Part shown: positions 22,910 to 63,420 of the stretch, one piece after another
Layout of the letters: every line of letters begins with the position of its first letter
Numbering within the stretch: the first letter of the stretch is position 1
NCBI GenBank assembly: GCA_977016875.1
Contig: CDRNST010000049.1
Location: 5,580,001 to 5,644,000 of the forward strand
Source: Pavona decussata
Lineage: Eukaryota
Reading direction: 5' to 3'
Length of the DNA: 64,000 nt
Notes under the pieces: model-generated
Databases searched by the model: none
What the model saw: the letters and a program-made list of their open reading frames with translations, nothing else
What the model was told of the DNA's origin: nothing
Program-made: the position numbers and the translations under genes

Positions 22910-22942
22910 ATGGCAAAATCTAAAGGAAAAATAGAGTTACAG
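22910..22942 (+). CDS. NME8: exon 1 ([11 protein letters not shown])
   Basis: ATG...CAG|gttagt, phase 0. Resembles the basic N-terminus ending in LQ of NME8-family proteins. Confidence 0.75.
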
Positions 22943-33100: not shown

Positions 33101-33940
33101 GTTGTTGTTGTAGTGGAGCTACCCAAGCAGGTCACTGTTGCTATCATCAAACCTGACGCTGTTCAAGCTGGACTTGTTGATGAGATTATACAAAAGGTAT
33201 TTATTAATTACTGCATGTGTATGCATGATTGTAGTTATAAACTAAATAATAACGGAAAAGTTTTGAGAAGTACTTACTCTGTGCAGTCAATTGCAAACTT
33301 GTTGGTGTTTAAAGTTAACCAAGATGTTTACTGTTTGTGATTGTGATTATGAATTTGTTGATGAGATAATCCCCCAAGATATATATTGCATACACGAATT
33401 AGTGTGGACTTGTCATCAAATGCATACAAGCTGAAGAGATGGCAATGACATTGCATTTGTTGGACAAGGGATGGCACAGTGGTGAGACCAAGAACACACA
33501 TCGTCCACCAATTTGGCATTATTAACCAGGCAACCTACTGCAAGCACAGTTGTAGATTTACTCAGAAACCCTCTTCATTAATAATTATTTCACCCAAAAT
33601 CTGGCTTTCACGCAATCAACTCAGCACTCGTCAGACGTTTGGTATTACTGTAAGAAACAATCCATAAAATAACAAGTACAATAATTTATTAATGCTGCTG
33701 GGAAAGAATAGTGGGAGCAGGGATGGCGCAGTGGTGAGAGCACTCGCCTCCCACCAATGTGCCCCGGGGTTTGATTCCTGGTCTCGGTGTCATATGTGCT
33801 CATATATGCTCCGAGGGTTTTTCTCCGGGTACTCCGGTTTTCCTCCTTCCACAAAAACCAACATTTCCAAATTCCAATTCGACCTGGAAACAGTGGAGAG
33901 AAGAGCCACTCCATGAATTCCACCGAAATTCCTATTTATT

Positions 33941-36900: not shown

Positions 36901-39900
36901 TACATTTTATCCAAAACATAATTAACTTTTATCATAAGTTTTTGATAAGTGACTCCCAAATTTTAACACTATCCTCTTTTAAGTGCTACATTAAGAATTA
37001 AAGTAAAAAAAGTCCACCAAGCTAAAGCTCCATGTTGCATTTTTGAGTAACTAAATTCTGGTTGTAGTTATCCTTCATTTATTGTTTGTGTTGTAGGGAG
37101 CTTGCCTTCTTTTATCCCGACTTTGTGGCTCCTACCGTAATTCAGAAGAGGAAAAAGAAACGTTTACAGAGAACTCTTGCCTTGATAAGACCAGATGCAC
37201 TGCAAACACGTAAAGGTAACTTGATCAGTTCCCTACCATTTTGATGTTATTCTTATTATTATAATAGCTATAAGTAGTAGAATGTGCACTGAGGTTAAAA
37301 CTGGGTAATGAACAAATATTCTTTAGCTGAGGATTCAGTTCTAGTACTGAAAGAAATTCTTGAGGTATCAATATTGAAATCAGCTCACAACATTCGTGAG
37401 GTTGACTATAGTTGTTCTTTAATTTCAAAGGTGTAAATAAGATTTGGACAGTCACCACCTATCCTAAACCACTTTCTTTACTACCTATATTAATATACAG
37501 GAAAAGAGCAAGCTTAAGTTTACTTAAGGATGGTGCCTACAAATAAGGAGGTATTTTTCCATGGTTTATGACTATGCAGGAAAAGCAGATCTTAGCAAAG
37601 CAGGGCAAAAAACTTTTTTTTATTCCACTTGTCCATTGGACGAGTAACGTTCAGATTCTGGTCGTCCGAAAGTTAATTTCACTAGTCCGAAATAATTACT
37701 AAAGTGAATAACAAAATGTCATAAAAAAACGTAGAAATTGTATGATCGGTTTTGTACCAAATCTCGAGTATTTATTTTAACAGTTATTTCAATTTATGTT
37801 GTTCTTTGCACTTTTTAATACAACACCATTTCATACAGACACATCGGGGATCACTCACATTCTTTATACACGACTTGAGAAAATGCAGCACATCTATGAG
37901 GCATTAAAACTGCGATCTAAGATGACTCCTTTGACTCCTCATTGATTCTACCGCTTATTCGCTGTAGCGGCGCCTGCTCTGGTTTTTCTTCGTTTTTAGC
38001 TCATTGAAAACAAAAGTAATGAGAATGACTCTTCTTGGGACTCACAAGAGAATCACGGCGAAAACCGGTGGCGGACGATCCATTGATGCCGACATAAAGC
38101 CGGCTTGCTTTATTGGCTACTGTCGGATACTTGCGGCACACAATGCAGAACATTTCATTCTTCTCCGCGTCAAATTTAACCCAGGGAAATTCTTTTTTCC
38201 ATGTTGGTTGGAATTTTTTCGAATTTGACTTTCTTCATATTTTCTCACTTTCTCACTCTTAAGATGTTCCTCTTTGCTGGAGTCAGGTTTTCTTTTACTA
38301 CCGATTTTCCATACATGTAGGTCAAGCAGATTAGCCGACATCTTGTACACTGACAGTGAAAACGTAGTATGTGATCTGATTTTATTTCGCGCATTTTTTA
38401 GTTGGGTCATGTGACATTTTTAAAGCATCAGCGCCTTTTATATAGCAGAATGGCTTGTAACGTTTCACGTCGTTTAAATTACACTATTAGACTGACAACA
38501 AAGACTTTAAAAGGTTTTATTACTTCTTTAATGATCACAAAACTTGCCACAACGGTAATCGCCTCGTTTAAGTGTCAATGAAGCCTTGTCTCAAATGAGA
38601 TAGTCATTTCCATATATGGTATGTGGATCCCAGTCATCATCGAAACGACAGAACCAGATATTCTCGGAAAACAGAAGCGAAAACGGGTAAGTTGCCATGA
38701 AAAGAGACCAAACTTCGCGAAACTCAGGCTAGTTTACAAAGTCCAAAATACTTGGGAACTCAGACCTCAGTACAAAAGAACATTTTTTTTTACACAAACG
38801 CTACTCGTCGGACAAGTGCTTTTGGAAATCCACTCGTCCGAGATACGAGAGTACTCGTCTCAGATGGGCGGACGAGCGAACGTTTTTTGCCCTGGCAAAG
38901 GCTATTGAAATGCAAAAAGAAAATTGGGGGTAACCACACATTTTTTAGAGACAATTAAGCAACAATCATTTTAAAGAGTAGTAAAATACAAAGCAATATA
39001 TGGTGTTTTTTTTTTCAAAATTGAAGCTTTATTATCTCTAAAAAATGCATGGCTACCCCCAATTTTCTTCTTGGATTATCATACCAAAAGCACTTGCTAA
39101 GTTCTGCTTTCTTCACATAGTTTTAAACTGCGCAAAATATCCCTGTATTAGTAGGCACCACCCATAGGAAACCCGAGTATCTCAAGATGCGCAGAACGTA
39201 GATGTATGCGCAGTAACAAAAGTAGGCTTCGTCCTTAATGTTACTGTAAATGATTGTATGTCAGGCAGGAGGCAGACCAGCTGGCTATTTCCAGGCATGG
39301 TCAAGGGACTTGAACTGGGGAGCTCTGGATTTCAAGTCCAGTGCCCCAAATGCTGAGGCAAACTACCTCCCAGTGGGGCCCAGCAGGGTCCACTATTATT
39401 ACAAAAGTCCATCCAGGTGCACTCTGAGATCAAGTTAATAATTATTGTTATCAATTTGCCATCAGATTCTATACTTGCAAAGATAGAAGAGGCAGGATTT
39501 ACTATAGCCATGTCAAAGGAAATCAATTTGTCAAGGGAGCAGGCAGAATCTTTCTATGCTGAACATAAAGACTCAGATTTCTTTGAGACTTTAGTTACAA
39601 ACATGACCAGGTTTGTGTAATATTACCTAGTTATTGTGTAATAGTTTAAGTTATTAATTGAATGGCTTGGTGTGCAAGAGAGACATTTAAGTGCATGATT
39701 TGCCCTCCAAGTATCTGAATTGATGCAAATCAGCTCTATGTTGGCCTTGCTACATACAGACTTGCAATTCCATCAGTGTTGACAACTCACTGAGTCAAGG
39801 TGCATACATATCATGTACTTAGTAAAGCCGGTGAAACACTAGGCGATTTTGTTAGCCGATTGTGGCAAATTTGTTCAGCAGCCGATTTTCGCCACTGATT

Positions 39901-45900: not shown

Positions 45901-48900
45901 TATCGAAGAGTGCGCACACTGTTCAATTTCACCGGTAGAGTTTGCCAAAAAGCTCTTGATACTGAAATAATAATTGTTACCTGTGGTCATTGACATCAAA
46001 CTTTACCATTAGCTTCGCTGAAGATTTTAAATCTAAATTGTTGGAAAAGTCCGGCAATGCAAAAATGTGTTTTCATTTAATTTGCGTATGTCATGTTTAC
46101 GTTCCTATGCAAATTTGTAAGAGACCAAAAGGATTATCGCTTTAGTTCTACTCAATCAATATTTCTCATGGTAATCAATCAGTCTAGTTATTTTAGTCGA
46201 TAGTTTTCCTATTGAATCGGCATAGCTTGGACAAAATAAGCATTAGCAGGGCAGGGAGAAAATTGACCTTTCAGATCATAACTTGAAATCGCAGATGAAA
46301 TGGAGCCGCAAAACGAAATTAGCATGTTCACCTTCTTATGCAAATTTTGTATGAGATCAATAACGCATTAAAAGAATGTTGAATTGGCTCTATTTTGCTG
46401 AATTTTGGCATAGAAATTAAGTTAATAGTTTTGGACTTTGAGTTGAAATACTTTGGACAAAATAAGTTTCAACACGGGTCAGTTTTGACAAACTGATCAA
46501 TTGACTCTGGGAATTGACCTTTGCCCGTAACTTTATACAGAAATAACAAACAAATTATTTCAATGTTTTATGTAAAATTGGGGCTTTCACTTTATAGCCA
46601 TACAAAAGTTTCCCTTTTAAACATTGGTACAAATTCAATTGTAGCCAGTGAACAATATTTTTCTGCTCAAGAAAGTTTCACAAACAACAGTTTTATAATA
46701 ACTGAGTCACGCAACGCAGACAAAGATTTCTTGTCTCACTTGGACTACTTCGCTTACATAGGCTTATCGGAGAAAGGAAGCATGTTTTTCATGTAACAGG
46801 TTTCTTTAAAACAGTTAAACAAAGTTACGTCTTCAAGAAAGATCTACGAAGTTGCTAAGTTGGTAAGTTACAATTTTGAACAATCATGTCTGACATGAAT
46901 GTGAAGTTGACCCTCTGGAAACTTATCCAACCATTCACCCCTCCTCCCCTCTGGAATTTCCTGGGCCATTGACCCCCCCACCCCTCTAGAATTTCCAATT
47001 CCCTCCGTGGTGGGGGTATGGATATTTTCTGGAACCACACAATTGCTGTACAGGCACGCTTGGTGATTTTTGCTAATCGCGGCGATTGACATATTAAATC
47101 GTGAAGTGTGTCACTGGCTTAAGAATCAGTCAATTGAAGAACATTGCCGCTCATATCCGGAGGCTGTCTTTATAATAATGACATATTAAGTCCAGTGAAA
47201 GTAAATATGTGAAATAATTCTGTGAATGTATCTAACTTTGCAGTGGTCCAATGTTGGCTTTGTGTCTGGCTCGTGAGGATGCTGTTGAGGGTTGGAGAGA
47301 AATGTTGGGACCAAAGGAAGTATCAGTAGCTGCTGATCAGGCTCCAGATAGGTAATGTAACTTCTACCTAGTGCCAATTAAGTGGATCGTGGGTGTGGCA
47401 CTTTTTTTTCCCTTGACTTTTAATGAAGATTTCTTAAGATATTGCATTTTTCAAGAAATTTGTTAAAATACCAGTGTTATTTAAAAATATGAAATTAATA
47501 TAATTATATTCAAAGAAAGTGAAGACATTACACTATTTTGTAAATAATAATTATAATTGTAACAGTCCAACCTCCTGTAAGCAACCACCCAAAATGTCAA
47601 ACATAAGTAGTCACTCATGGGAGGTGGTTGCTTATGAGAGGTCAAACCACAGGGAGTCTAACTTTTCAGTCATTTCCCTGTGCTTAGTTCAGGGGTACAA
47701 AATTAATGCGTGCTTGTATAACCCAAGGATAACTTAAACTTTGGCACAGTACCGTTGTAGAAGTGATAAAAACATTTTAAACAATTTAAGTGATGTCATG
47801 CAGAATGATTGCTGAACCAAGAACAGTTAATTCCTTATTATTTACTTAATGCGGTGTCTGTTCTTTTATCGATCGTGAATTGTCATAACATTGTCAAAGT
47901 AGCTGTGCACACCGACTGGATCTGCAGACTGTCCCCTTATATTAAACCACCGCTTTGAACCTATGTACCAAAGTATGACAGTTCAATGGTCTCAACACTG
48001 AAACCAAAGATATCGCTCAGTTTATGGCTTAGTTTATGTGTTCAAATGTACTAAATTATTTACGAATTAGCCCCCATTGTAAGTTTGGGTCATCTGTTAG
48101 GTGGTCTCTTATGGGAGGTTAAAGGCAATAGAAAATTTAAAACCTTCAGCCCAAAAAGTGGTTACAGTTAATCATTTGTCTCACAATTGAGTCACATAGA
48201 TGTGGATCGTGACGTTTCGATTTGACCAGGAAAATTGTGGTAGTTTGGAAAAGTGGTCGTATTGATAGTTTGCATTTTAATCGTAGTCTAAGGCATCAAT
48301 TCCAAGTGGAGGACAGTCCTATAAATCCGTTACATGGATCAGATTCACCTGAGGCAGCAGAAAAAGAAATACAACACTTTTTCCCTGTTCAGTCGACTGT
48401 AGCAGTTATTAAGCCAGAAGTTGAACCTGATAAGAGAGGTTTGTAATGAATTTAAGTTAGTAATATTTATGAGTTAAGTAATAAAGAAGGGAATTTACTA
48501 TTAATGCTTTTAAGGTTTCATAATTGTAACATCATTGGTTTTATGCCATGCATTTAGCTGATCAAGTTAAGGCTCATGTATTGAAACAAAGTTGTTTGGT
48601 TTACCAACAGAGTTGATGAATAAAGATAATTGGCCACCATTAGCCAGCCCTTTACTCTGACAAAGGGCGAACGCTCGAAACAACTCCGCTGATAAACCAA
48701 ACATTTGTTTCTACTCTCCACTGATGCAGGACTGCAGTTTCAATCTTTTAAAACTAATCCCCTTAACTGAGGCCATTGTTTTGTGTAGTTACTATTGACA
48801 GTTTCAACCAGTCAAAGGCAACAGTCAGTCTATACACCACCAGTGTGCACTACATGCCTTCAGACTCATACAATTATTTAATAGTTTACAAATTACCTTT

Positions 48901-51900
48901 CAACTCTGTTGATAAAACCAGAGATTTGTTTCCACTCCCCACCAACGCAGCACCATGCACTGTTTTTTTTTTTAACTAACCCCCTTAGCAATTTGTTTTG
49001 TCTGATTATTTACAGAGGAAGTGATACAGCGAATCAAAGAAGCTGGTTTTAAGATTCAGATTGAGAAGGAGGTGTCTCTCACTAAAGAATTAGCAGCCCA
49101 ATTCTACCATGAACACGAGGGTAAAGAGTTCTATGATGGTCTCACTGATCATATGGCGAGGTATATACACTTGATGCCATTTTCCTTATGAACTGTTTCT
49201 TACTCCACCTACATGTAGCTTGCAAAGTGTTTTTTGTAAAGTATGCAATCAGATTGACTTGTTGATAAACCATTTATTCATCAACAAGTACCGGACGAGT
49301 GCTTGAACGTCAGTTTTAATTGTATGAAACAAGTGTCTTAATTATAAGACCAGTACTATAAGTAAGTGATCAATAGACTTTGCTTGAAGAGATTCGTTAG
49401 CTGTTAATGTTGCATGTAATACTTCTTTGCTTTTTATGAGACTCTTTTGGGAGAAACACTTCTTTATTTTGAAATGTCACTTATTATTATGGACATTGAT
49501 TTAAATAATCCAAACAAAAGTCACTTGTAAGTTGTAACCCTTCAGTTCAACTAATATCATAATTGTACAAATTAATTTTGCTTTAGTTGGTATGGACAAT
49601 TTATGCCTGATGATATTGGAAAACCTTCTATAATTGCAGTTATTAAAATAAAAAAAATATGTGAAGAGTTTTAGGCAAAAATATCGGAAGTGACTTTTCT
49701 GCCTTAATTGAAATCAAAATTGCCTCAAATAAGCTACATATTTTGGCAGAGATTAGTTATCATGTAAGAAACTAAGTTCTGGATTTAGTTTTTGGAGTGA
49801 GAGGCTAAAACAAACAAGGGATTAACTTTTTATTTTTATTCAAAATGCAAGTGACCTACATGAAAGAAATGCTTCATTTTATTTGGCTCAGTTTTTAGTA
49901 AAAAGGAAATAAAATAGGCAAATTCTTTGCATCGAATTAACACCCTCTGCATGTCATATTGTATTTTAATCACACGCAACTTAACTTTCGCCCTCTTTTC
50001 CCGCATAATCTGACTTACACAACTTTGAAAATGATGACATGGAGTCATTGAAATGTCAGTCACCATTGCTATTGCTTGTTTTTATTTTAAATTGTTTATC
50101 AAAAACCCTCATTATTATAATCAAAGCATTTGGCTCAAAAACTGTTAAAATGTAGAAGTTTCTCACTTGATAACCAGTCTCAGTTGTGCTAAAATATGGC
50201 TTATTAATTTTGATTTGAAACTAAAAAAGTCACTGTAACGATAGTCTAGTTTGTATAAACCCCTTCAATTTCAAGTAGTCCAGTATTTGTTCTCAATTTG
50301 TTCTAAAGGAAAATGGTTTGTACTTGAATATTTCATATGACTGGCCAGTGCGCATAACTCAGTACCTGACAATTAATGAATTTTCTTCCAGTGAAACTCG
50401 AAATAAAATTAAGTTATTGAAAAATGATGCATCAACCAATTGTGAGCAGGGTTATAAGAAGGCTCGATCCTTAGTCTAGTCACGCTTATTTAATTCATGA
50501 TTTGTGGCTTATTTGATCCTGCAGCCTAATCTAAATAAGCCACAACTTTTGACCATCATAAACACTCTTGCCTTTACATGTAAGTCAAAGTGTTCTGTAT
50601 TTCGTCAAATTGAAAACCCAAGCTCCATTACATGGGCTTTGCCTCTTAAATAATTTTAAGTGCTCAGTACCATGTATGTTAGTGTCATAACGTGACACAC
50701 TTTTCTTTTAAACATCAGTGGTCCTACATTGTTTATGGTACTAACAAGAGAGGATGCAGTCAGTGGATGGAGAGCACTGATGGGACCCACTGATCCACAG
50801 CAAGCTTTGGATGTTGCACCCGACTCGTATGTTTTTTTTTAAATTGGGTCTTTTATAGTGATGCATGAAGTAAGAGTTGATATTTTGCAGGACATAATAT
50901 TCAGAGATGGGGAAGTGGTAGGAGTGGAGTGGTAAATCTGTGACTGCCGAGATACTGATACCACTTCATTATCAATTACAGTCTAATTGACAGAGCTGCT
51001 GTAAAATAATATGCATTTAGCTAGCAATCTCAAAAAACAAGATCGATAAGGCCAGACATGCATTTCTCAATGCTCCTGAAGAACGTTTGGGCCGAAAGGT
51101 ATTCAACTTATCCCTTTTCTACACATTGCCAGTTATTTTTTGTACAAACCAACTCAATGTGTTTCTTAATCTTGGAAAACTTAAAATGTTTTTGCTTTCA
51201 AAATTAAAAAAACTATATTTTTGGTCATGAAGTTTGTGTATGTAAAATAATTTTTCTGGTCTGAAATCTGAGAAGTGCATGCCTGGTCTACAAAATTGGA
51301 GCTTCTGATACTAAGCCTAAACTTTTTGAGTCTCTGGAGTTTTTAAGGGATTATTTAATTGAAAACCCTGGTTTTGAGAACACTTACACCCACATTTGTT
51401 GTTGGTTTTCACCCACAAAAAAGCAAAATCTAAGGTCATAGTGTTTCCTCAATATCTTTTAAAGACCAGATTAAAATTCTAAACAATTTGTATTTTGCAA
51501 CATATTATTATCTTGTTTTGGTTTTGATGTCAGTCTCAACTGGTCTCTATTACTGCTAAGGCCTAAATCATTAAAAATCTATATTCCTCTTTCTTTAAAT
51601 TATATTGCAAAAATTGTGATTGGCATCATTCTCTTATCCTTGTAGTCTTCGGGCGCAGTTTGGTGTGGATTCAATGAAAAATGCTGTACATGGCAGTTCT
51701 TCTCTAGAGAAGGCTGAGAAAGTAATTAAAGAGTTCCTACCTGAGGTTGAAATTTTACCAGATGGAACAGTCAGAGGTTTGAATTTTCAATGTGTATGCA
51801 CATTTTCACAAGCTCACCACCTTGTAATTATGTTAAAATTCGAAGGAGTTTTGTTTTTTTTTTCCTTCCTATGACATTCCACACTGCAGCTCATTAAAAG

Positions 51901-54900
51901 TTTTGTTCTGTGGTTAAGATTTCTTTATTAAGTTAAGTACACTCCTTTTTAACTTGAACTTTTCTTGCCAAGTTATCTTGTCTGTCTCGGCTTTTTGCTA
52001 ATGTGGTTGTCATTTTCAGTTTTTCACGTAACAAACTTGCCTTTCTCCACTTAAATAATATCCAAAAAGGTTGCACAAACAACCTGCAGAAAATGTTATT
52101 TTTCCCTAGCCAGTGATAGACTTGGTGGATTTGGCGAAAGTTCTGTGACTGGGAGAATTGGTTAAGACTAGAGATAGTGAAGATGGTAGGGCCTTTGCAG
52201 ATGGTAGAGAGGGGTTGTAGAGTTGAGTGGGTATAGGAGAGTTGTTGTAGGTGTCTCAGTCTTAATGAATTCATTGACTGCCTCAAAAGCAGTGGGTGCC
52301 TTCTACTTTAACCTTTGTAGTCTGGTTAGATTGCATCAAACCTCCTGAGAACCTTTTGCATTCCCCAGCATAGACCAGTGCTGGTCAACTAGACCAAAGG
52401 TTACACAACACTTGCTTGGTAAAGATGGCAGCAAAGACTTTCTGGAGGGGTTGGGGGCAGTGATTTGGGACTGGATTATGTGGAGTTTTCGGTCAAATTT
52501 CTGGAAATTATGATGCTGTTGGAAATGGTGAAGTTGGTAAAGATGCTGGGTTGATGCAGATGGAGTAACTAAAGTTCATGGGGATAGTGGAGTTGGTGGA
52601 GTTATTGAGGCTTGTGGATTTTGTGAAGTTGGAGTTTGTGAAGTCAGTCAGTAGTGTGGATTTGGTAGACATTGTGTAGTTTCTAGAAATGGTGGGTCAA
52701 TGAAGTAAGCTAGTGTTCATTGTTGAGTTGTTGGGGATGGAGTTGGTGAAAAGGGTGAAGTTGGTGGAGGTGGTGGATTGGTGGAGATGATGACTTTGAT
52801 GGAGTTAGTGAAGATGGTGAAGTGATTGATGTTGTATGTGGAAATGGTAGAGACAGTGTAGTTGCTGGAGTTTGTGGAGTGGGGAGGTGGTGAAGTTGTT
52901 GGATATTGCGAAGTTAGTGGAAATTATCAGTGGATCTGGTGGCGATAATGAAATTGCTGGCGTTTTGGCAATTGTTGGATGTGTTTCAGTAGGTGGAGTA
53001 TGTCTGGATCATGGAGTTCATGTACATAATAGAGATTATGGTGCTTGTGGAGGTGGAGGTGGTGGTGAAAAAGGTGAAGTGGTGAGGTTACTGGTAGGTG
53101 GATGTGGTAGAGTTGTTGGAGTACATGTGTGGAGACAGTGGAGTAGTTGGATATGGTTGTAGTTGGTGGGGATTGAGGGGTTAGTTGGTGGAGTTCTTAA
53201 GGAGTTGCTGAAATTGTTGATCTTGGTGGGGAAGTAGTAAGGGTGGATATGGTAGTCTTGTTAACTGCCTGGTAAAGTTACTTCCTGGTAAATCATCATT
53301 TTGTGGTCTTGATGATGATGAGCATCGTAATCATCATAATTGGTCATCACGATCATGATCATTATCTTACTTTTATCTCCCTTCTCTTTTTTCTGTGAAG
53401 TACCTAAAGATGAACCTGAACCCGACAAAGAGGACCAACAACAAGAGGATAAAGAAATAAATAAAAAACCTGACGGTATGGACGTCTCTTTCTCATGTTT
53501 CTGTATGATTAGTAATTAAACACCAATCAAAGTTCATGTTAATGCAGGATTAGTTTAATCGGCTCTGAACAACTGGGCTCAGATTGTGGATGAATGCCTT
53601 AAGACAATTTGCGTAGTTGTAACGATCAATGGTCTTCATCCCAACTGGGACGTAAGGCTGCAACTAATTTCTGCCACTAGGGGCGATCTCTCAACTGTAA
53701 ACATTAATTTGCTTCATGTGAATTTATTTCAGAGCAATTCAGTGAACCTTTGGGAATGGAAAGTGGTAGCATCCCCAATGATGCCATCAAGGCATCATCT
53801 GAACTTGATGAGCAACACAGTGCTTTAAGAGCTCGCTTGAACACCAAGCCTGAAGGAGAACAGATGGGTGCCTGGGTTCCACTTGAAAGTGATGAGAACC
53901 AGTGGCTTCAGGTGGATCTTGGGAAGGTCACAAGACTTACAAAAATAGCTGTACAAGGAGAAGCTGGTGACAGTTCCCGCCACGTCAAGGAGTTTACTGT
54001 CTCGTGCAGCTTTAGCGAGGAAGGGTTCATAGCTTACAGAGAGGATGGCAGTGAAAAGGTAAACTGTTTCCAGATGTTAGGATCTGTCCACACTAATGCA
54101 TTTTCAAAAATGTCTGTTTTCATCTCGGCGAAAACGAAGCAAAATATTTTCACCCACACTAGAGTTTTCCTATTGTTTTCACCTATCCACACTGAAACGC
54201 TTGAAACCAGAAAAACACGGTGACCTGGGATTGGGCTTGTGTTAACATCACAAGACCATCTGCCTTCTTGGATAGATGCTCTGATTTGGAGTGCAACCGA
54301 TGGCATGTGATGCTTTTTATGTCGCCGTTTTCAAAACTCTCCGTTTTCACCTTTCCCCACTAGAAACGAAGCGTTTTTAAAAGCTTCCACTTTTGAAACC
54401 GTTTTTGAAAGTCTCCATTTTCATCGGCATTTTCGTGCATTTTAGTGTGGACAATAGGCGAAAACGCATAAAAAAGGTATGTGTTTTCAAACGAAAACGT
54501 GTTAGTGTGGACAGGGCCTTAGACTCAATACACACCTCACTAAAAGTGAATGTGTATAATATTATTGCACCTACTAACTCTTCCATATCTTTTGGCCAGG
54601 TTTTTGAGAGCAATTCAGACCAGGACACAGTTGTATTGAACAGTCTAAAGAACCCAGTTATAGCACAGTTCTTGAGACTACAGCCTAAGACCTGGAATGA
54701 AGGCATTGCCATGAGAACTGAGTTTTATGGATATAATGCAGGTATGCATGTCAGTTTAGAAATGATTGGGAGAAGATCTACAAGACATAAAAAATCCCTC
54801 ACATAATCAATTTTCATTGTTTTCAATAGATGCTTTGAATAATTAAACTTCTTAAACTGTCAGTAGAAAAATTAAACTAATGTTGCCCGATGTTACTTCC

Positions 54901-57900
54901 ATCAAGGCAAAGTGAATGAAACTGTCGCCAAGAAAATTATGCCTCTCAACTAATCACCCCCCTTTGAAAGAATTGCTGCATCATTGCTTTAACAAAAACT
55001 CTTACACTGGATCTGTCATCTTTCCATGAAATACAGAACTTTAAAAACATATGACGATGAAGATGTATATGTGATCTGTTTTGGTTGTGTTTTAACAAAG
55101 ACTGATAAATTGACCACTTAGGCTGCCGCCACTGGGGTCTTTCAACTGTAACCATTAATTTGCTTCATGTTATAATTGTCGTGTGATTTATTTTAGAGCA
55201 ATTCAGTGAACCTTTGGGAATGGAGAGTGGTAACATCCCCAATGACGCCATCAAAGCATCAACTGAACTTGATGTACAACACAATGCTTCAAGATCCCGC
55301 TTGAACACCAAGCCTGAAGGAGAACAGGCGGGAGCCTGGGTCCCACTAGAAAGTGATGAGAACCAGTGGCTTCAGGTGGATCTTGGGAAGGTTGTGGAAA
55401 TAACAAAAGTTTGCACTCAGGGTGGTGGTGAAAGTGTAGAGTATCGTGTTAATAGCTACGTCCTGTCATTCAGTGAAGATCAGGAGAACTTTCAGGAATA
55501 TCAGGAAAATGGCGAGACAAAGGTCAATATACACGCTGTTTTGTTCTTTATTAATTTAGGCTCCCTTCCCCCTCCAAACCCACCCACACAACATGGAAAC
55601 AAAAGCATATGGGGGTTAGTTTCTAAAGAAACTGTGTTGTTTCCACGGTGGGGAGAAGAAACAAATGTTTCGTATAATCAGCAGAGTGCATAACTAAAGG
55701 TCATTTGGCCACATACCCTAAGAATATTCGAGATTCACTCTGACGAGGGGCTGCAAATCCGAACTGTTTACGGTGGCCACATTATCTTTGGTAATCAACT
55801 CTGTTGATAAAACCAAACATCCGTGGAAACAAAAGTGTTGTATTGTTTGTGCCTCTGTCCATAATTTGGATAAACAGTTGGTGCGCATTACTTGGTTGGC
55901 ATCATAGATAGCCATTCCCCCATAAAACCTCTATTCAATCCGTTGCTATTGTGGGAATTGGTCCTTTTTGTTGGATTTATAAGAAAAAAACCCTGGAAGG
56001 TGCACAACTACTACAGAATACAGTTATTTTGAAGACTGCTTAAGGGAATTCTGAACTTGCATCAAGCTGCAGGTTATAGTTGTTTATTATTTTCTTTTCT
56101 AAATTCCATCTGTATTTATTCCAGGGCAGTGCTTACCTGGAAAAAAGGGCAATGAGTTCCTCCAAATAAGCGCATCTTAAATGTTGAAAAATTTTCCTTT
56201 CCTCCTCTGTCTTTCTTTCTAAATGTCATACCAATCTAGCGTAACCAAGAAAACGTCAAATTGTTCTTTACGTAACAGCTAAAGCAAGCAACATAAATTT
56301 TTTCCTTTGGTAATTTGCATCTAGTCCTTGTAAAATGCAATATTTTTTGGCTCGAAAAGGTTTTACGCTGTTAGAGTATATGTGAGACGACGAAAGGTTA
56401 CAAAAAAGTAGTTGCATTGCCGCAACAAAATGTTGTGTTAAAAGTTGTCTGCATGCTATGTTGTGTTAAAAATCGTCGTTAAAAGTTGTCTCGTGTTAAC
56501 ATCACCTTAAGTCATATTCACGTCATCGTCTAAAGGTGATGTTTACACAGAACGATTTTTAGTCTTCAAATTAAAATTTCTTTAAAGTTGTTATCACGCA
56601 ACATAGCGTGCGGCAACTTTTAACGAAGCAATTTGTGGCGGCAGCACGACGCTTATATCTGATATGTCGCTTGACATGTCGATCAAGGTATCCTTTACCC
56701 GACTGTGATCGACACTTGACCGATATACAGCCGATGGTTAACCGATAACCCAACGAGAGTTTCTCGGTCCATACATCAACCAATATCATGGAGGCTATTA
56801 GGTAAGTTATCGTTCAAGTCTCGGTCATCAGTCAAGTGGTATATCGGCTGTCTACCCACCAAGTATCGACGGACATATCGATTGTGATAGCGACCGCTTC
56901 CATCGATTGAGGCCCCCATAAGACACATGAAGACAAAGTAAAAAAAAATTATTTGTTTCATGACACATAAATGTTACACACTACACATATAAAATGGGTT
57001 TGGTGATGGGGAGCCTGAGTTTGAAGCTGGGGGCTTATAAGGTCCGGGCTTCCCCAAGCTTAGGATACTACAAAACAGAGTGACAAGAGTTAAGGCACTG
57101 ACACAGTGAAACCTCCTCTGAATCTGTATTGGACACAGAGGCCATGAGAAGGAAAAACAGGACCATAGACAGTGATACAAATTGTACAATTGACAGTCAT
57201 TTAATGGTGGATCATGGTGATGTAGTATACAGGGTGTCATAATCATTTTAGGAGGAGGGCAATTGATTCAATAAATGTGGCTTTGTTTTTACTTTTTAGG
57301 TGTTTGAAGGCAACTCAGATGGCGACACAGCTGTTAGTCACTGGCTCGTTTACCCTGTCAGAGCACGGTACTGTACACTGAAGCCCAAAACATGGAATGA
57401 ACAGATTGCATTAAGATTAGAGCTGTATGGAAAATTGGTAACAGGTAAAAGCTAGACTGCAAAAAGGCATGCAATAATTATACTGACTGTAACAACTAAT
57501 TGTGCGAAAGTGTCGAGTAATATTTTTTTGTAATAATAACTACGTAAGGATTAACAGTCATCTGTTATAATTTTTATATATTATCTTTATTTCAATTGAA
57601 TGTTTTTGTTTTGCACTGGCATTACTTATTAGTACTACAGGAAAACAACTCCGAAAAACATCTTGCCGACTTAAAATATAAGTATAGGCAAGAAGAGAAA
57701 ACATATAAAAGATATAAACGTAATGTTTCGGTTCTTATTCCAAGACCATTATGGAAAGTAAAAAGACAACAATGCGATGAACTTAAAAAGAATGCTTATA
57801 CTTGGAAAGTGTGAATATTAATGACGTATTAAATATAATGGGAATGCACAAGTGAACAACAAGAATGTAAAGCAACAATGCAACAAAGCGGAAAACTACT

Positions 57901-60900
57901 AAATATTGAAATTATAAGTTAAATTAAAACAATACAAGCTGTTATTAGCCACATATAAATATTTCATTGTGTTTTAAATTGATTTTATAACGTGATAAAA
58001 TCATAGCTAGCCATTGTGTAGCCCTGCAGTGCACAGGGTAAAGTATGTGCTTTTGATTTAAGGAAGTTAAATTGCATGGTTCCACAAAATGCCCATATCC
58101 TCATCTCAATGGGCGGTGCCCCTCGGACTTTCCTTCCTCTAAGGATTTTTCACATTGTGATACGGAATGCTTCTGCCTTGCCCAGTGCCAAATGTACAAA
58201 GGGAAGGTTCAGGGAAAATATTATATGGCTTGATGGACAAATAGAAAATAACTTTAAACTTCTGTTTGTTTAGGATAAGTTACGGTTATTGTTCCATTTC
58301 ATAAAGTTAGCATAATTTTGATGTGGAATAATAGTTTCAACACATATGTTCTAGGACACATCCAGAACTTCCTGAACCTCATAACGCACCTTCCCTCTCA
58401 ATATTCCAGAATTCGTACTCTAATTTGCAAAGATGCGGATATTTTCTGGAACCACGCCTGCCTTTCGCAGTATTTCTTTTAACGACCCTTTTTAAAAATG
58501 TAACCAGAATAGCATTTAATTTATTAACCTCTTTCTGCTGAGATACTGAAATTTGATGTTTCAATGATCACTGTAAGATACATTTGGCTTGGTTTTTTGA
58601 CCTTGAATAAGTAGTAAATAGATTTGAATTAAACCTACGTAACATTAACAACCTTCAAACCACTTGGTCCTGGCGGGATACTAATTAACATCACGTGAAG
58701 TACAATAGGCCGTTTCCGACTTGTTTTGGACCTCATTGGCTAAATGGAAAGCTTTTTATATGAAAACAAGATGCCCCTCTAATGGCATTACACGGAATGC
58801 TTAATGTAGCCCCAATTATTCCCCATTGTATGTTTCGCAGATATTTAAAAACTATCCTCCCTTGGCAATTGAAATAATTGTCTGAATGGTTTTATTCAGA
58901 TATATTGCGTGATACTTCAGGAATCATAGGAATCATACCAGAAATAACTATGCAATAGCGTCATGACCCCGCTGAACTGGTCTGGCCTCCTCTAGCTCTA
59001 ATCCTTCGCGTGGATCATTCGATCTGTTTTTTAAAGCGGAGTTTCTTTGCTGCGAACTCTCCCAATTTCCACCGTTTCAACTGTCGAGTACTACCTAGAA
59101 GCTATTATTTCGATTTACTGCTTGAAAAAGGTTTATTTTCTCTCTGAAAACGGCAGATCAAAGTCTTAAATTCATACATGTGGCCGCCATTGAACAAAAA
59201 CAACTTTTCGAAATGATGACTTGCTTTGACGTCACACAGGTAGAGATAAGTGGGTCCCCTCCCTCGTGATATACGCGCCGATAATAGATTTTGATTGGGC
59301 TGTTTTTGTTCAAGACAATCAGAACAATAAATCCCTTCTGGGAGAGGGTAGAATTTAATCAAGGTTTATTGAATAAATCAAATAATGATTTGACGTCACA
59401 CAGGAAGGGATGAGTGAGTCCCCTCTCTCGAGATATGTGCCCGAATAACAGATTTTGATTGGGCCGCTTTTGTTGAAGACAATCAGAACAATACATCCCT
59501 ACCAGGGGAGGACATAATTTAATGCATAAATTAATGTGGCGATTTGTGACTACGACGAAGAAAAAAAAGATACCCAACCGAAACCTAGACACGTCATGCC
59601 CTGCGGGCATTCCGTGTAATTACTTTTGTTTGCATATGAATGAAAAATAATTTTCATGCTAAAAACTGTGGAGGAAGTCTCGCTTTCATAATAAAGTTCA
59701 AAGCAAGCTGGAAATGGTCTATTGGAACTGACTATTAAAGAATAACAGTAGTGCAATATTAAATGTTCCAGAGTTTAAACTTAATTTTTCTTTAACACTG
59801 AAGCAATCCACTGTTTTTGAACTAAAAGCCTGCCTGCGTATTGAAACTTGTGTGGTAGTTGTTTAGTCCATTTTATTCCTTTTTATTTTATCTTCGTTTT
59901 AGTTAACGTTAATTTGATTGTGGCATACCTAACGTTAATCAATCAAGTTTCCTTGATATTAATGACAATGCCATTGATAAAGATAATTATTAAAGACATT
60001 TTAAACCAACATTGAGTACCACTTAACACTACTAATATGTATTTTTTAACACAGTAAACTGTATTTAGTGTGCAACAAAGATGGGCGGTACACCCCATGC
60101 CCTTTGGAACACCAGCCAGATGATCACTGAGCTGCTGCAAAGGGAGACTCACGGCAAGCTAGCCTGGACACTGTTTTGTGGTAAACCGAAGACGGTGAAT
60201 TGCGTATCCCAGTCCGTTTAACATACTACCATCTTTCTTTTTATGCACACTTGTTTTTCTGCACATTTGTTCGTTAGAGTATGTATGGTCCCATGCAATT
60301 TCAGAGCTAAAAAACCACAGGTCTCATGACTGGTTTGACAAGAGATGCGTGAGAGATTTACGACAAACGGCAAAAATGACCACATGACCACGATTTTCCT
60401 ACATTTCGGGTCGCGGTTTTCCGTTTCTAAGTAAGGTAGTTTCGCGTTAGCATCAAAGGTCAGATTTATTTTGCACTATGTTTGTCTACTCACTACTTCT
60501 ATTTAAGAAACGATAACACGAATCTAACGTTTGCTGTGTCTGTAAACGCAATCCTAAATCTTTCTAACAGTTCACATCACATTGGTAGCCTCTGCCCTCG
60601 AGTAACTTGCTTGTGAAATAATGACACTTTGTTTAATCACCTTTGGCATTAAAAAAGCAAAAACAGATATGAAACAAGAAACTTAAGAACGAATTAAACA
60701 GAGTACTAAATTTAAAAAAAACATAAACTACCAACTTTGAGCCATAAACGACAATGTATTTCTATAAGCTTGCAAACCATGTCAGACCTTAGATGATATT
60801 AAGGAACCAGTGTGTTATCAATGAACTGCTGCCATCTACATGTTTCACAGTCTTAAATGCACTTGAACTCTCATCGAGTTGAATCCTGGCGCGTAACTAC

Positions 60901-63183
60901 TAATGCGTCTACGGAGTCCCTGTGTAGAGCTATTATATTTTAACACAAATTCTGAACGAAGCTAGTTGGGTACTTATTGAGTTCGACGAAGGATACGCAT
61001 ACTAATCTGTTGGTGTGCTTGTGTTGTCATGTGCGCGTCCCCTACATATCAGCAGACCTTTTTTATTCAGCATCTTTTTTTTTTTTGCATCCTTTTCCGT
61101 CGCCATTTTGAATGACGTCATATTGTAGTTCCCCAAATATGCCTTTCAAACACACGATAGAAACTCCTCCCTCTGTTGCAAGATATTTGATGAAGCAGTT
61201 GATTTACGCAGAGATCAGTTTCTAATTTCTAACTTGCAACATGAAAATGTGTTGGATAACAGGTTACATGTGTTGGTAGTATTAATGTGCAGCTGATATC
61301 AGGCAGCAACGTAAATTATAACAACATATAACATGACACCTTTGCAAAAAATAAATGTTAGGTTGTTTTCATGTTGCAAGCCGCAACAACACAAGAATTA
61401 ATCTCGATAAAGGCTCGATAATATGGCAGCTGCCTTCTAAACTAAACTTCCTGTTCCATAAGTGGAAAGCAACAGAGAAACAATTTTAAAAACGCGTTAC
61501 TTCGATTGTTGAAAACTAATTGCATCGAAAGGGTTAAAATAGATCTTGCGCTGTAGTTTTTGCCCCTGCTTTGTCTGTCTACACTTCTTTGACCATCGTA
61601 TGATTAGTTTGAAAATGGAAGCCACTGCAAAATTTGCGATACATTAGATAGAGTTGCCCTGCAGTTGTTCTATATTTCAAATTTTATTGGCACAAAACTA
61701 CTTTTCCAAAAGTCTCGAGTCACTCATCTGCAGTGAATGTCAGTGGTAAGCGCATTCCAGTATTTTGAAGAGGTAGGTACCGACATACCTCTGTGTATGA
61801 CAGATCATGGTCATCTGGTTGAAATATAGAAGCCTTTTAGTTGTTTGAACAGCACAGTTTGTGATTATTTTGGCACAAGTGGGAGTAATTCTTGAACCAC
61901 CCCCCTCCCAGCCCCCATTGAGTAACCTTGTTACAACTTCAATACAAGGTTTGAAGCTTTGCGTCTCAACTCATAAATTTAAACACAGTTTCTTGACTTA
62001 AAATCGACACATGTAAAAGTACATTGAAAAGTGTAATTTTGTTCATAAATACGATTTAACCAATAAACAAATGAATGCTGTCAAAAATAAAAATAAAATT
62101 TTACTTAAAACGAACGAATTCACCTTAAAATTTAAAACTATTAGATATATAAATATCAGTTGTTTGTAGATATCAAGATTGGATGCTGAAAGAGCAGTCT
62201 TGAATATGTTTTGCTTGTGTAGATGTGTGTCTTTACACCGTTGGAATCACCCACAAAACCCTGATTCCGGCCATAATTGGGGGTTTGGCCAATTTAGTTC
62301 CACTTTTCCAGTTGATGATTACATCCATATTAGCACTATAACATTGACAACATCCAGAAGATTGTATATCAGATAATCTTGGGAGAAACCTTTGTATCTC
62401 GGCCACATTAATGTCAGGCAATTTCTGAACTGTTAACTGATGTTGCCCTGGTCCTCATTTGAAAGAATGTCTCCATCTTGTTCGATATTATGGGCAATTC
62501 TCTGTGGAAATGTGTTAATAGGAGTTATTGTTGTTTACTATTTCTAAACATTAACTTTTGCAGATGATAGGGCTAGCAGTGACCAACAGTCTGAAGAACC
62601 TGTACAGGAGGCAGATGATAAGCCAGCAGAGAAAGATGGAGCAGAACCCCAGGCAGTCCAGCAGGGTGAAGAAAGTCAGGGAGAACCTGAACGTGTTCAG
62701 GAGAATGAGGAGAATGCTGAAGCGTCTGAAGGAGTTAAAGAGAGTGCAAGTGAGGAAAGCAAACCAGATGAAGGGCAGAAATCAGAAGAGGCTGGGGAAA
62801 GCGCAAACAATGAGAGCAAACCAGATGAAGGTGTGAAATCAGAAGCGGTTAATGAGAGTGGAAATGATGAAAGTAAACCTGAGGAGAATGTAAAGTCAGG
62901 AGAGGTAAAAGAGGGAGGAGATGAGGAAAGCAAACCTGCTGAAGGTGAGAAATCAGGAGAGGTCGGTGAGAATGCAAACGATGAGGCGGAGAAAGAATCT
63001 GAAGAGGTTAAAGAGAGTGCAGCTGATGAAAGCAAACAGGACGAAGGTCAGAAATCAGAAGAGGCCAATGAGAGTGCAAACGATGAAAACAAACCTGAGG
63101 AGGAAGGTGTAAAATCACAAGAGTCTGCCGAAGATCCTGCACAGCCTGAAGCTGGGAATGCTGATCAGGCTGAAACTAAATGA
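22910..63183 (+). CDS. NME8: NME8/TXNDC3-like thioredoxin + 3x NDP-kinase protein (outer-arm dynein intermediate chain type) with 2 C-terminal F5/8 type C domains and acidic tail; 23 exons, ~1143 aa
   Basis: Hand-spliced GT-AG exons join in one frame: 22910-22942, 27869-27926, 28173-28276, 29083-29154, 30962-31078, 31759-31846, 33114-33196, 34315-34442, 35232-35363, 36090-36164, 37097-37215, 39466-39610, 47244-47351, 48287-48438, 49016-49160, 50719-50826, 51646-51776, 53401-53475, 53733-54058, 54600-54741, 55197-55522, 57300-57444, 62564-63183. Total 3432 nt. Contains the Trx motif [14 protein letters not shown] motifs IIKPD/LIRPD/VIKPE and [24 protein letters not shown]. Co-orthology with NME9 cannot be excluded. 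Confidence 0.9.
23779..23823 (+). CDS. candidate alternative exon 1 ([15 protein letters not shown]), GC donor
   Basis: ccaatATGGCG start context. Ends LQ at CAG|gcaagg, phase 0, compatible with exon 2. Confidence 0.4.
25219..25779. mobile_element. TGT-terminated (Ginger-like) MITE
   Basis: TIR TGTGCAGTTCCAGAAAA.ATCCATA / TATGGATATTTTCTGGGACTGCACA. Confidence 0.7.
25293..25648. mobile_element. Harbinger-like MITE nested in the previous element, TTA TSD
   Basis: tta|GGCCCTGTTCAGACTAGGTGCCC...GGGCACCTAGTCTGAACGGGGCT|tta. Confidence 0.8.
25822..26173. mobile_element. Kolobok-like MITE, TTAA TSD
   Basis: ttaa|GGTGGCACCATAC...GTATGGAGTCACC|ttaa. Confidence 0.75.
26630..26995. mobile_element. 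MITE with ~44-bp TIRs (TAG termini)
   Basis: TAGAGACCTTTAGATTCTAGTACGAGTACGAGTACGACTACGAG and its exact reverse complement. Confidence 0.85.
27000..27378 (+). mobile_element. TTAA-flanked GGACGGTG MITE family, copy 1
   Basis: ttaa|GGACGGTG...GTACTGCC|ttaa; homologous to 28512-28903 and 37528-39234. Confidence 0.8.
27869..27926 (+). CDS. NME8: exon 2, thioredoxin N-part ([19 protein letters not shown])
   Basis: aag|GTT...ATAG|gtaag. Confidence 0.9.
28173..28276 (+). CDS. NME8: exon 3, thioredoxin active site WCGPC (28193-28207)
   Basis: [34 protein letters not shown]; cag| ... |gtgagt. Confidence 0.95.
28512..28903 (+). mobile_element. TTAA-flanked GGACGGTG MITE family, copy 2
   Basis: ttaa|GGACGGTGCC...CAATGTCC|ttga. 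Confidence 0.8.
29083..29154 (+). CDS. NME8: exon 4 ([24 protein letters not shown])
   Basis: Trx cis-Pro region QPTFLF; aag| ... |gtaagt. Confidence 0.9.
29543..29784. mobile_element. MULE-like MITE with 9-bp TSD
   Basis: TSD aactgataa on both sides; long imperfect TIRs (tgcgagccagcgaggcatgcaaggca). Confidence 0.8.
30962..31078 (+). CDS. NME8: exon 5 ([39 protein letters not shown])
   Basis: Trx C-terminal part; aag| ... |gtaagt. Confidence 0.9.
31759..31846 (+). CDS. NME8: exon 6, acidic linker
   Basis: [29 protein letters not shown]; cag| ... |gtaag. Confidence 0.85.
32578..32782. mobile_element. Tc1/mariner-like MITE, TA TSD
   Basis: ta|CAGTGC...GCACTG|ta with ~50-bp imperfect TIRs. 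Confidence 0.7.
33114..33196 (+). CDS. NME8: exon 7, NDK1 start (TVAIIKPDA)
   Basis: NDK motif IIKPD; tag| ... |gtatt. Confidence 0.92.
33713..33978 (+). mobile_element. tRNA-derived SINE with V-domain-like core and (ATTT)n tail
   Basis: tggcgcagtgg / ggtttgattcc boxes, ggtttttctccgggtactccggttttcctcc core, ATTT tail. Confidence 0.8.
34315..34442 (+). CDS. NME8: exon 8, NDK1
   Basis: [27 protein letters not shown]. Confidence 0.92.
34602..34785. mobile_element. short palindromic MITE
   Basis: aataggccatttccgagttg...caactcagaaatggcctatt; related termini at ~58704 and ~59723. Confidence 0.7.
35023..35156. other. assembly gap (N run) in intron 8
   Basis: Run of N characters. Confidence 1.
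35232..35363 (+). CDS. NME8: exon 9, NDK1
   Basis: SGPCMTLVL...[19 protein letters not shown]. Confidence 0.92.
36090..36164 (+). CDS. NME8: exon 10, NDK1 catalytic His region
   Basis: [26 protein letters not shown]. Confidence 0.92.
37097..37215 (+). CDS. NME8: exon 11, NDK1 end / NDK2 start
   Basis: ELAFFYPDF...[16 protein letters not shown]. Confidence 0.92.
37528..39234 (-). mobile_element. TTAA-flanked GGACGGTG MITE family, copy 3 (inverted, interrupted)
   Basis: ttaa|GGATGGTGCCTAC...GTAGGCTTCGTCC|ttaa. Confidence 0.8.
37601..38894. mobile_element. hAT-like non-autonomous element with 6-bp TSD
   Basis: gcaaag|CAGGGCAAAAAAC...GTTTTTTGCCCTG|gcaaag; subterminal ggacgag/ctcgtcc motifs. 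Confidence 0.8.
39466..39610 (+). CDS. NME8: exon 12, NDK2
   Basis: [34 protein letters not shown]... Confidence 0.92.
40222..45739. mobile_element. foldback-type element with ~2.05-kb inverted arms (40222-42273 / 43689-45739)
   Basis: acat|AACACATGTTCAG...CTGAACATGTGTT|acat. Mirror-image ORFs appear in the track. No transposase seen. Confidence 0.9.
42417..42717. mobile_element. small MITE in the foldback loop
   Basis: GGGTGCTTTCCA...TGGAAAGCGCCC termini; TSD not preserved. Confidence 0.55.
47244..47351 (+). CDS. NME8: exon 13, NDK2
   Basis: [26 protein letters not shown]...APD. Confidence 0.92.
48287..48438 (+). CDS. NME8: exon 14, NDK2 end / NDK3 start
   Basis: SLRHQF...[22 protein letters not shown]...VAVIKPE. 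Confidence 0.92.
49016..49160 (+). CDS. NME8: exon 15, NDK3
   Basis: [48 protein letters not shown]. Confidence 0.92.
50719..50826 (+). CDS. NME8: exon 16, NDK3
   Basis: [36 protein letters not shown]. Confidence 0.92.
51646..51776 (+). CDS. NME8: exon 17, NDK3 catalytic His region
   Basis: [33 protein letters not shown]; ends phase 1 (G|gtttg). Confidence 0.92.
53401..53475 (+). CDS. exon 18, acidic linker
   Basis: Polypyrimidine tract + aag|, [26 protein letters not shown]|gtatg (phase 1-1). Confidence 0.75.
53733..54058 (+). CDS. exon 19, F5/8 type C (discoidin) domain 1, N-part
   Basis: [18 protein letters not shown]...ARLN...GAW...NQWLQVDLG...IAVQG; cag| ... |gtaaac. Confidence 0.9.
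54080..54518. mobile_element. Harbinger-like MITE, TTA TSD
   Basis: tta|GGATCTGTCCACACTAA...TTAGTGTGGACAGGGCC|tta. Confidence 0.8.
54600..54741 (+). CDS. exon 20, F5/8 type C domain 1, C-part
   Basis: [44 protein letters not shown]. Confidence 0.9.
55197..55522 (+). CDS. exon 21, F5/8 type C domain 2, N-part
   Basis: Paralog of exon 19 with the same 326-nt length; QWLQVDLG...VCTQG. Confidence 0.9.
57300..57444 (+). CDS. exon 22, F5/8 type C domain 2, C-part
   Basis: [44 protein letters not shown]. Confidence 0.9.
59225..59525. repeat. ~165-bp direct tandem duplication (2 copies)
   Basis: tttgacgtcacacagg...gattttgattgggc...agacaatcagaacaata...aatttaat occurs twice. Confidence 0.75.
62564..63183 (+). 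CDS. exon 23, terminal acidic low-complexity repeat tail
   Basis: cttttgcag| phase 1, open to TGA at 63181-63183; E/D/S/K/G-rich. Confidence 0.8.
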
Positions 63184-63414: not shown

Positions 63415-63420
63415 AATAAA
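63415..63420 (+). terminator. candidate polyadenylation signal AATAAA
   Basis: AATAAA about 230 nt downstream of the stop codon. Confidence 0.5.

Follow-up and report, generated by a model that had tools for sequence, protein, structure and literature searches.

A conserved tandem discoidin insert predicted in an anthozoan NME8-type thioredoxin-NDK gene

The 64,000-nucleotide stretch of Pavona decussata DNA analysed here (the window; GenBank assembly GCA_977016875.1, contig CDRNST010000049.1, positions 5,580,001 to 5,644,000 of the forward strand) carries on its + strand a gene of the NME8 type. The gene occupies about 40 kb (~22910-63183) and encodes one thioredoxin domain (Trx), three nucleoside diphosphate kinase domains (NDK1 to NDK3), a linker, two F5/8 type C discoidin domains (F5/8C; D1 and D2) and an acidic tail. 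The gene is probably the counterpart by orthology, in stony corals (Anthozoa), of the protein called NME8/TXNDC3 in vertebrates, outer-arm dynein intermediate chain IC1 in sea urchin and IC3 in Ciona, with a linker and a discoidin pair set into it in frame. Three features of the NME8/TXNDC3-IC1 type were found, namely a thioredoxin domain with a CGPC active site, three tandem NDK domains and an acidic C-terminal region, and the only named orthologue matched to the gene is a RefSeq 'thioredoxin domain-containing protein 3 homolog'. What the gene represents is a real, conserved and lineage-specific variant of a known ciliary protein, one predicted by automatic annotation and for which we found no describing paper. 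The window was searched exon by exon; loci of relatives are designated below by L numbers and public proteins by P numbers.

Exons from the third NDK domain to the acidic tail

The third NDK domain ends in an exon at 51646-51776, bordered by an AG acceptor and a GT donor, that supplies the final 36 positions of the Pfam NDK profile, closes with ...LPDGTVR and stops one base into a codon (phase 1). The same 131-nucleotide (nt) exon with AG/GT borders is present in the relatives L002, L003 and L004. Next on the + strand is an acidic linker exon of 75 nt (53401-53475) that is phase 1 on both sides and lacks an in-frame start codon; it has counterparts of matching position and phase in seven other loci and appears in the RefSeq protein P0349, described below, as VPKDEAPEPDKDKSEQEDIQRISD. 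D1 is encoded by a first exon at 53733-54058 (D1a; +, 326 nt, phase 1 to 0, Pfam F5_F8_type_C positions 2-82, E 6.4e-13) and a second at 54600-54741 (D1b; +, 142 nt, phase 0 to 1, positions 86-127, E 5.8e-7). D2 repeats this layout at 55197-55522 (D2a; +, 326 nt, phase 1 to 0, positions 2-88, E 4.6e-17) and 57300-57444 (D2b; +, 145 nt, phase 0 to 1, positions 86-127, E 3.6e-4). Both domains are of the classical PLGMESG...QWLQVDLG type. Scores against the family profile (PF00754) are 49.4 and 30.1 bits for the two exons of D1 and 62.8 and 21.1 bits for those of D2, each pair spanning profile positions 2-127. Measured against the Pfam gathering score of 28.2 bits, D2 passes on its 62.8-bit exon, the second exon 57300-57444 scoring 21.1 bits when taken alone.

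The C-terminal tail exon (62564-63183, +) is entered through a phase-1 acceptor and closed by a TGA stop at 63181-63183. It encodes about 205 acidic residues (34% D+E) arranged in approximately seven 57-nt (19-residue) repeats, and a Pfam search of this exon matched no family. A candidate polyadenylation signal, AATAAA, was read at 63415-63420 (+), about 230 nt 3' of the stop. A preliminary description of this DNA had proposed the exon borders, phases and domain identities from 51646 to 57444 and at 62564, and all were borne out on the + strand by AG/GT sites and Pfam matches. The count of exons in that description, in which 51646-51776 is exon 17, may be shifted by one or two, which is immaterial; the exon coordinates themselves are correct.

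The intron after NDK3 holds, at 52100-53250, a G/T-rich degenerate minisatellite with units such as AGTTGGTGA and TGGAGTTTGTGAAGT and a GC skew of +0.38, which is not kept in L002-L004. A patch of similarity links the two first discoidin exons (53673-53930 versus 55137-55392): the 5' two thirds of D1a and D2a (~200 nt), together with ~60 nt of upstream intron, are ~92% identical, and the remainder is saturated. Within the window the synonymous divergence (dS) between D1a and D2a is 0.29 in the similar part and not computable in the rest. Window positions 53686-53928, covering the flank and 5' part of D1a, also match the D2a copy of L001 (10143-10386) at 95%. This pattern indicates later gene conversion between the tandem copies.

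Conservation in other anthozoans

In an effort to place these exons in a comparative frame, relatives were reached through single-exon open reading frames (ORFs) of public assemblies that are 50-99% identical to the discoidin exons (L001-L007 and L016). The order NDK3 end, linker, D1a, D1b, D2a, D2b is kept on one strand in at least eight anthozoan loci besides the window (L001-L007 and L016). L016 is Acropora digitifera, L007-L014 are from Tara coral metagenomes, and L006 is from a deep-sea coral metagenome whose BioSample falls within the range in Vohsen et al. 2020 (PMC7068898), where the corals are Leiopathes glaberrima, Callogorgia delta and Paramuricea sp. Exon by exon, the window is 64-88% identical to these, and the second exon of D2 is 79-98% identical in relatives. 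Exon lengths of 131, 326, 142, 326 and 145 nt recur in nearly all loci, the exceptions differing by whole codons, with AG/GT sites kept; the second exon of D1 is 142 nt in all relatives examined. The linker evolves fast and is nonetheless present in every locus read, at 75, 75, 75, 84, 81, 60 and 69 nt, always a multiple of three and with its phase-1 frame open. In L002, L003, L004 and L005, where the locus extends far enough, D2 is followed by an acidic open frame that has a phase-1 acceptor. The entire gene takes up only ~11 kb in L005, and there the intron from the NDK3 donor to the linker exon is 100 nt long.

Compared with L002-L004, three moderately diverged relatives, DNA similarity drops sharply at the predicted exon edges. 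The same comparison gave no further conserved block in the stretch from NDK3 to D1 or in that from D2 to the tail, and no conserved start or signal-peptide exon there. The continuous in-frame chain set out in the preliminary description, from NDK3 through the linker and two F5/8C domains to the tail with no start or signal-peptide exon intervening, is thus one that at least eight anthozoan loci retain. As conservation falls at the exact exon edges, and all relatives examined retain the exon lengths and splice sites, the predicted exon structure is far beyond chance.

Ratios of nonsynonymous to synonymous substitution (dN/dS) against the relatives are 0.11-0.26 for D1a, 0.09-0.25 for D1b, 0.19-0.38 for D2a and 0.07-0.17 for D2b, a range (0.07-0.38) measured at dS 0.65-1.3; a neighbouring NDK exon gives 0.07-0.09. 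On these comparisons the discoidin exons are under purifying selection and are translated, without a start of their own, translation being argued by the strong selection together with the phase-keeping insertions and deletions (indels) of the linker. Even in the locus most remote from the window, D1 resembles the D1 of other species, and D2 their D2, more closely than D1 and D2 resemble one another, and the duplication therefore predates these lineages.

Further features were seen in the loci of the relatives. The intron before the linker in L001 (1-8030), a close relative, contains genes with matches to a Pox_A32-type ATPase and an rve integrase that are absent at that place in the window, and the insertion resembles a Maverick/Polinton-type element. 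In L004 (18512-20299) and L016 (28587-35177) the gene is followed directly, on its 3' side, by an RCC1/WD40_RLD-repeat gene, a mark of conserved synteny; the window ends before this position.

Public gene model, database searches and literature

The architecture is already in databases as an automatic prediction, because the 773-residue Acropora digitifera protein XP_015752740.1 (P0349, 'thioredoxin domain-containing protein 3 homolog') carries Pfam Thioredoxin, NDK and two F5_F8_type_C domains, the discoidin score being 174.7 bits over the two domains. This model joins NDK3, linker, D1 and D2. Its exon junctions are those of the window, at 77-88% identity exon by exon, so that the fusion junctions from NDK3 to the end of D2 proposed in the preliminary description are reproduced by a RefSeq entry. 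It differs in that NDK parts are missing or read through introns, in ending without the tail, and in using an alternative first exon.

XP_015752740.1 was found as a member of the 90% cluster of the exon ORF P0157. Its surfacing inside an ORF-represented cluster led us to reject the idea that the fusion is absent from public annotation. A search of representatives can miss an annotated fusion because short genomic ORFs stand as the representatives and hide full-length members. A phmmer search with the D2 exon against 1.84 billion representatives returned no protein combining NDK and discoidin domains among the best 150 matches, a result that is uninformative on absence.

Literature searches combining NME8 with discoidin, discoidin with axoneme and dynein, and TXNDC3 with coral names returned no paper describing the architecture, and the Nme-family surveys consulted mention no discoidin domain. 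The preliminary description did not know the architecture from the literature, and we too found no paper on it; to the databases it is not unknown, given the domains of XP_015752740.1.

The protein collections yielded two further entries. The Porites evermanni protein P0208 was set aside as uninformative, being an NDK1 fragment at a contig end only. An 84-residue entry, P0209 (MCG8407686.1, 'MAG: discoidin domain-containing protein, partial [Phycisphaerales bacterium]'), belongs to the 90% cluster of P0177 together with coral exon ORFs; it reads like the first exon of coral D1 and probably stems from DNA of a coral host that was binned with a bacterial genome.

Fold, cysteines and ligand sites of the discoidin domains

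An AlphaFold model was built on residues 447-773 of P0349, that is, on the orthologue, with the window exons entered as separate alignment rows. The discoidin region of this model has a mean pLDDT (predicted local distance difference test) of 92.3. Single modelled domains superpose on factor VIII C2 and neuropilin b1 with a TM (template modelling) score of 0.92 and a root-mean-square deviation of 1.3-1.7 Å. The assignment to PF00754 is matched by an above-cut-off hit over the whole domain and, in the P0349 model, by the discoidin beta-sandwich fold.

F5/8C domains are textbook extracellular modules. The position of the N-terminal disulfide cysteine is F or Y in all 14 of the orthologous domains read, and is C in 190 of 324 paralogous domains. 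The C-terminal cysteine persists only in D1 of some species, and the classical disulfide between first and last positions is missing. Loss of the N-terminal cysteine, along with a protein start that has no signal peptide, fits a cytoplasmic or axonemal location.

Where factor V C2 has its lipid-inserting Trp-Trp spike, and neuropilin-1 b1 the aromatic residues of its pocket (Y297/W301), the coral domains align with polar or acidic residues. By this alignment, neither the hydrophobic spikes of factor V/VIII nor the C-end-Arg pocket of neuropilin is present in the coral domains. As the spike and pocket residues are not conserved, neither the factor V nor the neuropilin binding mode is transferable, and the membrane-binding arm suggested in the preliminary description draws no support from them.

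Comparison with known systems and origin of the insert

With NME8/TXNDC3, IC1 and IC3 the window protein has in common an N-terminal WCGPC thioredoxin domain, three NDK domains and the lack of a signal peptide, as well as an acidic C-terminal tail as in IC1. It differs from them in the linker exon and the two F5/8C domains between NDK3 and the tail; in sea-urchin IC1 the tail comes directly after NDK3. The best matches to the WCGPC exon among solved structures are axonemal thioredoxins, namely TXNDC6/NME9 of the human axoneme (8j07) and the 14 and 16 kDa light chains of the Chlamydomonas outer arm (8glv), which are much shorter and without discoidin domains.

The discoidin pair has the same fold and tandem arrangement as neuropilin b1b2 and factor V/VIII C1C2, with a Foldseek E value of 5e-33 to neuropilin-2 b1b2 and 30-40% identity. 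Those proteins are extracellular and disulfide-bonded, whereas the coral domains have F or Y in place of the N-terminal cysteine. Discoidin-like or galactose-binding-like folds are also found inside cells, in IFT25/HSPB11 (inside cilia) and at the N-terminus of muskelin; these are a precedent and are not close in sequence.

A two-discoidin paralogue in Nematostella, EDO45367.1 (P0052), is ~40% identical to the pair. It possesses the phase-0 intron before VF, the 142-nt second exon and the phase-1 border between domains. It differs in having no Trx or NDK domain and in its neighbours, another F5/8C gene and a VWA gene. Since internal intron phase, exon length and border phase agree in this way, the data fit a class 1-1 module that was placed into a phase-1 intron and then duplicated. 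The suggestion of the preliminary description that a symmetrical phase 1-1 module was exon-shuffled into the gene accords with these observations, and a multi-discoidin gene like P0052 is the kind of source from which a shuffled module could derive.

Alternative explanations

Several observations weigh against the fusion or its proposed setting. P0349 is an automatic prediction on a gapped assembly, messy upstream and ending by read-through at an N gap; as that gap follows D2, the model does not bear on the junction from D2 to the tail. Close matches other than P0349 are all single-exon ORFs called on genomic DNA. Searches of protein collections with exon 19 and with the 230-residue read-through ORF of L001 returned only genomic ORFs with intron read-through, and the tail exon as query in the protein collections gave no match. 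Inclusion of the exons in the transcript is thus read from comparative genomics and one gene model. The 2010 Nme-family survey gives Nematostella Nme8 as thioredoxin plus three NDPk domains only, and the discoidin insert may accordingly be absent from, or missed in, sea anemones. The Nematostella paralogue also has cysteine-less discoidin domains, and cysteine loss is for that reason no proof of a cytoplasmic life. The axonemal location, finally, would follow from orthology only.

One alternative, which we consider unlikely though worth weighing, is that the discoidin exons are cassette exons of a minor or tissue-specific isoform, the main product being Trx, three NDK domains and the acidic tail joined by a splice from 51776 to 62564. 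The phases permit this: phase 1 is found both at the end of exon 51646-51776 and at the start of the tail, and because the linker is a phase 1-1 unit, as is each two-exon domain, any of these can be skipped in frame. Established knowledge of sea-urchin IC1, with its tail straight after NDK3, also speaks for such a product. Purifying selection on all four discoidin exons and the phase-keeping indels of the linker nonetheless argue that they are translated, and the one public model reached, P0349, includes them. Cassette exons are compatible with the fusion favoured here, and would alter how frequent it is and not that it exists. Another alternative is that the discoidin exons are decaying, non-functional remnants of an old insertion. 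This we regard as scarcely credible: the exons have open frames and intact splice sites, their dN/dS values are 0.07-0.38 and their lengths are kept at saturated or near-saturated synonymous divergence, and the modelled domains fold with high confidence.

It is also very unlikely that linker, discoidin domains and tail are a gene of their own, transcribed from a promoter within the intron that follows NDK3 and giving a secreted protein with two discoidin domains, the fusion being an artefact of prediction. Neighbouring genes do get merged by gene predictors, F5/8C domains are typically extracellular, and the relatives with solved structures are, without exception, factor V/VIII, neuropilin, lactadherin, CASPR2 or DDR. 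There is also a stretch resembling a signal peptide (53355-53400), opened by an in-frame ATG at 53355, that runs into the linker exon. That frame is not conserved, however, and the peptide is the polypyrimidine tract of the acceptor read in frame. Since an in-frame TAA occupies this place in L001, the closest relative, the ATG is most likely chance, and we rejected 53355 as an alternative start. No candidate running from an ATG to a phase-1 donor with a hydrophobic core was found in five other species, and the candidates of L004 lie elsewhere. A separate gene is further at odds with the want of any other conserved block between NDK3 and D1, with the NDK3 donor standing only 100 nt from the linker exon in L005, and with the loss in every orthologue of the disulfide cysteine expected of a secreted discoidin. 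Splitting the gene would moreover remove the acidic tail, a part of the IC1-type protein.

Proposed role of the discoidin arm

In the fused gene that we favour, the linker exon and the tandem two-exon phase 1-1 discoidin modules would sit, in the anthozoan lineage, in a phase-1 intron between NDK3 and the tail, and would be spliced in frame into the same mRNA as the Trx/NDK part. We infer by orthology only that the product is a ciliary or flagellar dynein-associated subunit. Because the protein starts without a signal peptide, the discoidin pair would be made in the cytoplasm and would enter the axoneme as part of the whole protein. There the thioredoxin end would dock on dynein, as do related axonemal thioredoxins, while a binding partner would be met by a flexible C-terminal arm made up of the discoidin pair and the acidic tail. 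With phase 1 on both sides, the insert could be included or skipped without a shift of frame; as every inserted unit keeps phase 1, in-frame isoforms with and without it are possible. The binding role of the arm and the inclusion of its exons in the main transcript are both put forward here as inferences from these data.

A stronger version is that a coral outer-arm dynein subunit took up a formerly extracellular discoidin pair as a cytoplasmic arm to a lineage-specific partner, with inclusion switched by in-frame skipping. We think this improbable as a whole. Candidate partners, were it so, would be the inner face of the ciliary membrane, a glycosylated or acidic-loop-binding axonemal protein, or a signalling molecule. 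If true, anthozoan cilia or sperm would have gained a control of motility not known in other animals.

To our knowledge, core subunits of axonemal dynein seldom gain domains. A conserved, cysteine-stripped discoidin pair under selection in a ciliary Trx/NDK protein would be a clean natural example of how exon shuffling can transfer an extracellular module to a cytoplasmic machine. The gene also offers coral biologists a concrete target, as corals depend on ciliary flows and motile sperm in feeding, in clearing mucus and in fertilisation. It represents no new kind of system or principle; the value lies in pointing out the architecture and testing it.

Upstream exons of the gene

The likely first coding exon (22910-22948, +, approximate borders) begins with the ATG at 22910, and its translated block is kept in L005 (1543-1581). 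No signal peptide was found at this candidate protein start. This exon may resemble the N-terminus of vertebrate NME8, a likeness to be taken as a lead only. An alternative first coding exon (23779-23829, +, approximate borders) matches residues 1-17 of P0349 and L005 2376-2417. Both candidates are kept in L005, a distant relative, and the second is the first exon of the RefSeq model from A. digitifera; for these reasons the two conserved first exons suggest alternative promoters or N-termini.

The thioredoxin domain is encoded on the + strand by exons at ~27863-27925, 28172-28276 (WCGPC), 29083-29154 and 30959-31075, with a Pfam Thioredoxin match of E 9e-7 on 28172-28276, and these exons are colinear between window, L005 and P0349. 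A short acidic spacer exon (31798-31866, +, approximate) was recognized as a tblastx block common to window and L005.

All NDK exons lie on the + strand. Those of NDK1 are at ~33113-33199, 34312-34446, 35224-35358 and 36088-36165 (Pfam NDK positions 2-23 and 24-65), the last with the motif NAVHGCDS; an assembly gap (N run) at 35023-35156, within this exon set, is intronic. NDK2 is encoded at ~37074-37217, 39459-39614, 47236-47349 and the first part of 48285-48440 (to 48380), matching Pfam positions 18-65 (E 7e-13) and 66-96, and its blocks are kept in L002, L003 and L005. NDK3 takes up the end of 48285-48440 (from 48381) and continues at 49006-49164, 50717-50827 and 51646-51776 (Pfam positions 18-65, E 4e-12, and 100-135, E 1.3e-6). 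Together the three exon sets match Pfam NDK positions 2-65, 18-96 and 18-135, and three exons carry the ...HG[CS]... motif.

Other features of the window

Upstream of the gene, on the minus strand, an uninterrupted open frame of 775 codons (11221-13545) has no Pfam match and may represent either a gene without introns or the ORF of a mobile element. A tandem array of 24/48-nt units at 4457-5657 comprises ~25-47 copies with a G+C content of 0.53 and contains stop-free stretches of up to 422 codons in several frames on both strands; a Pfam search of the array frames matched no family. Adjoining this array, a 312-nt repeat is present in ~5 copies at 2766-4451.

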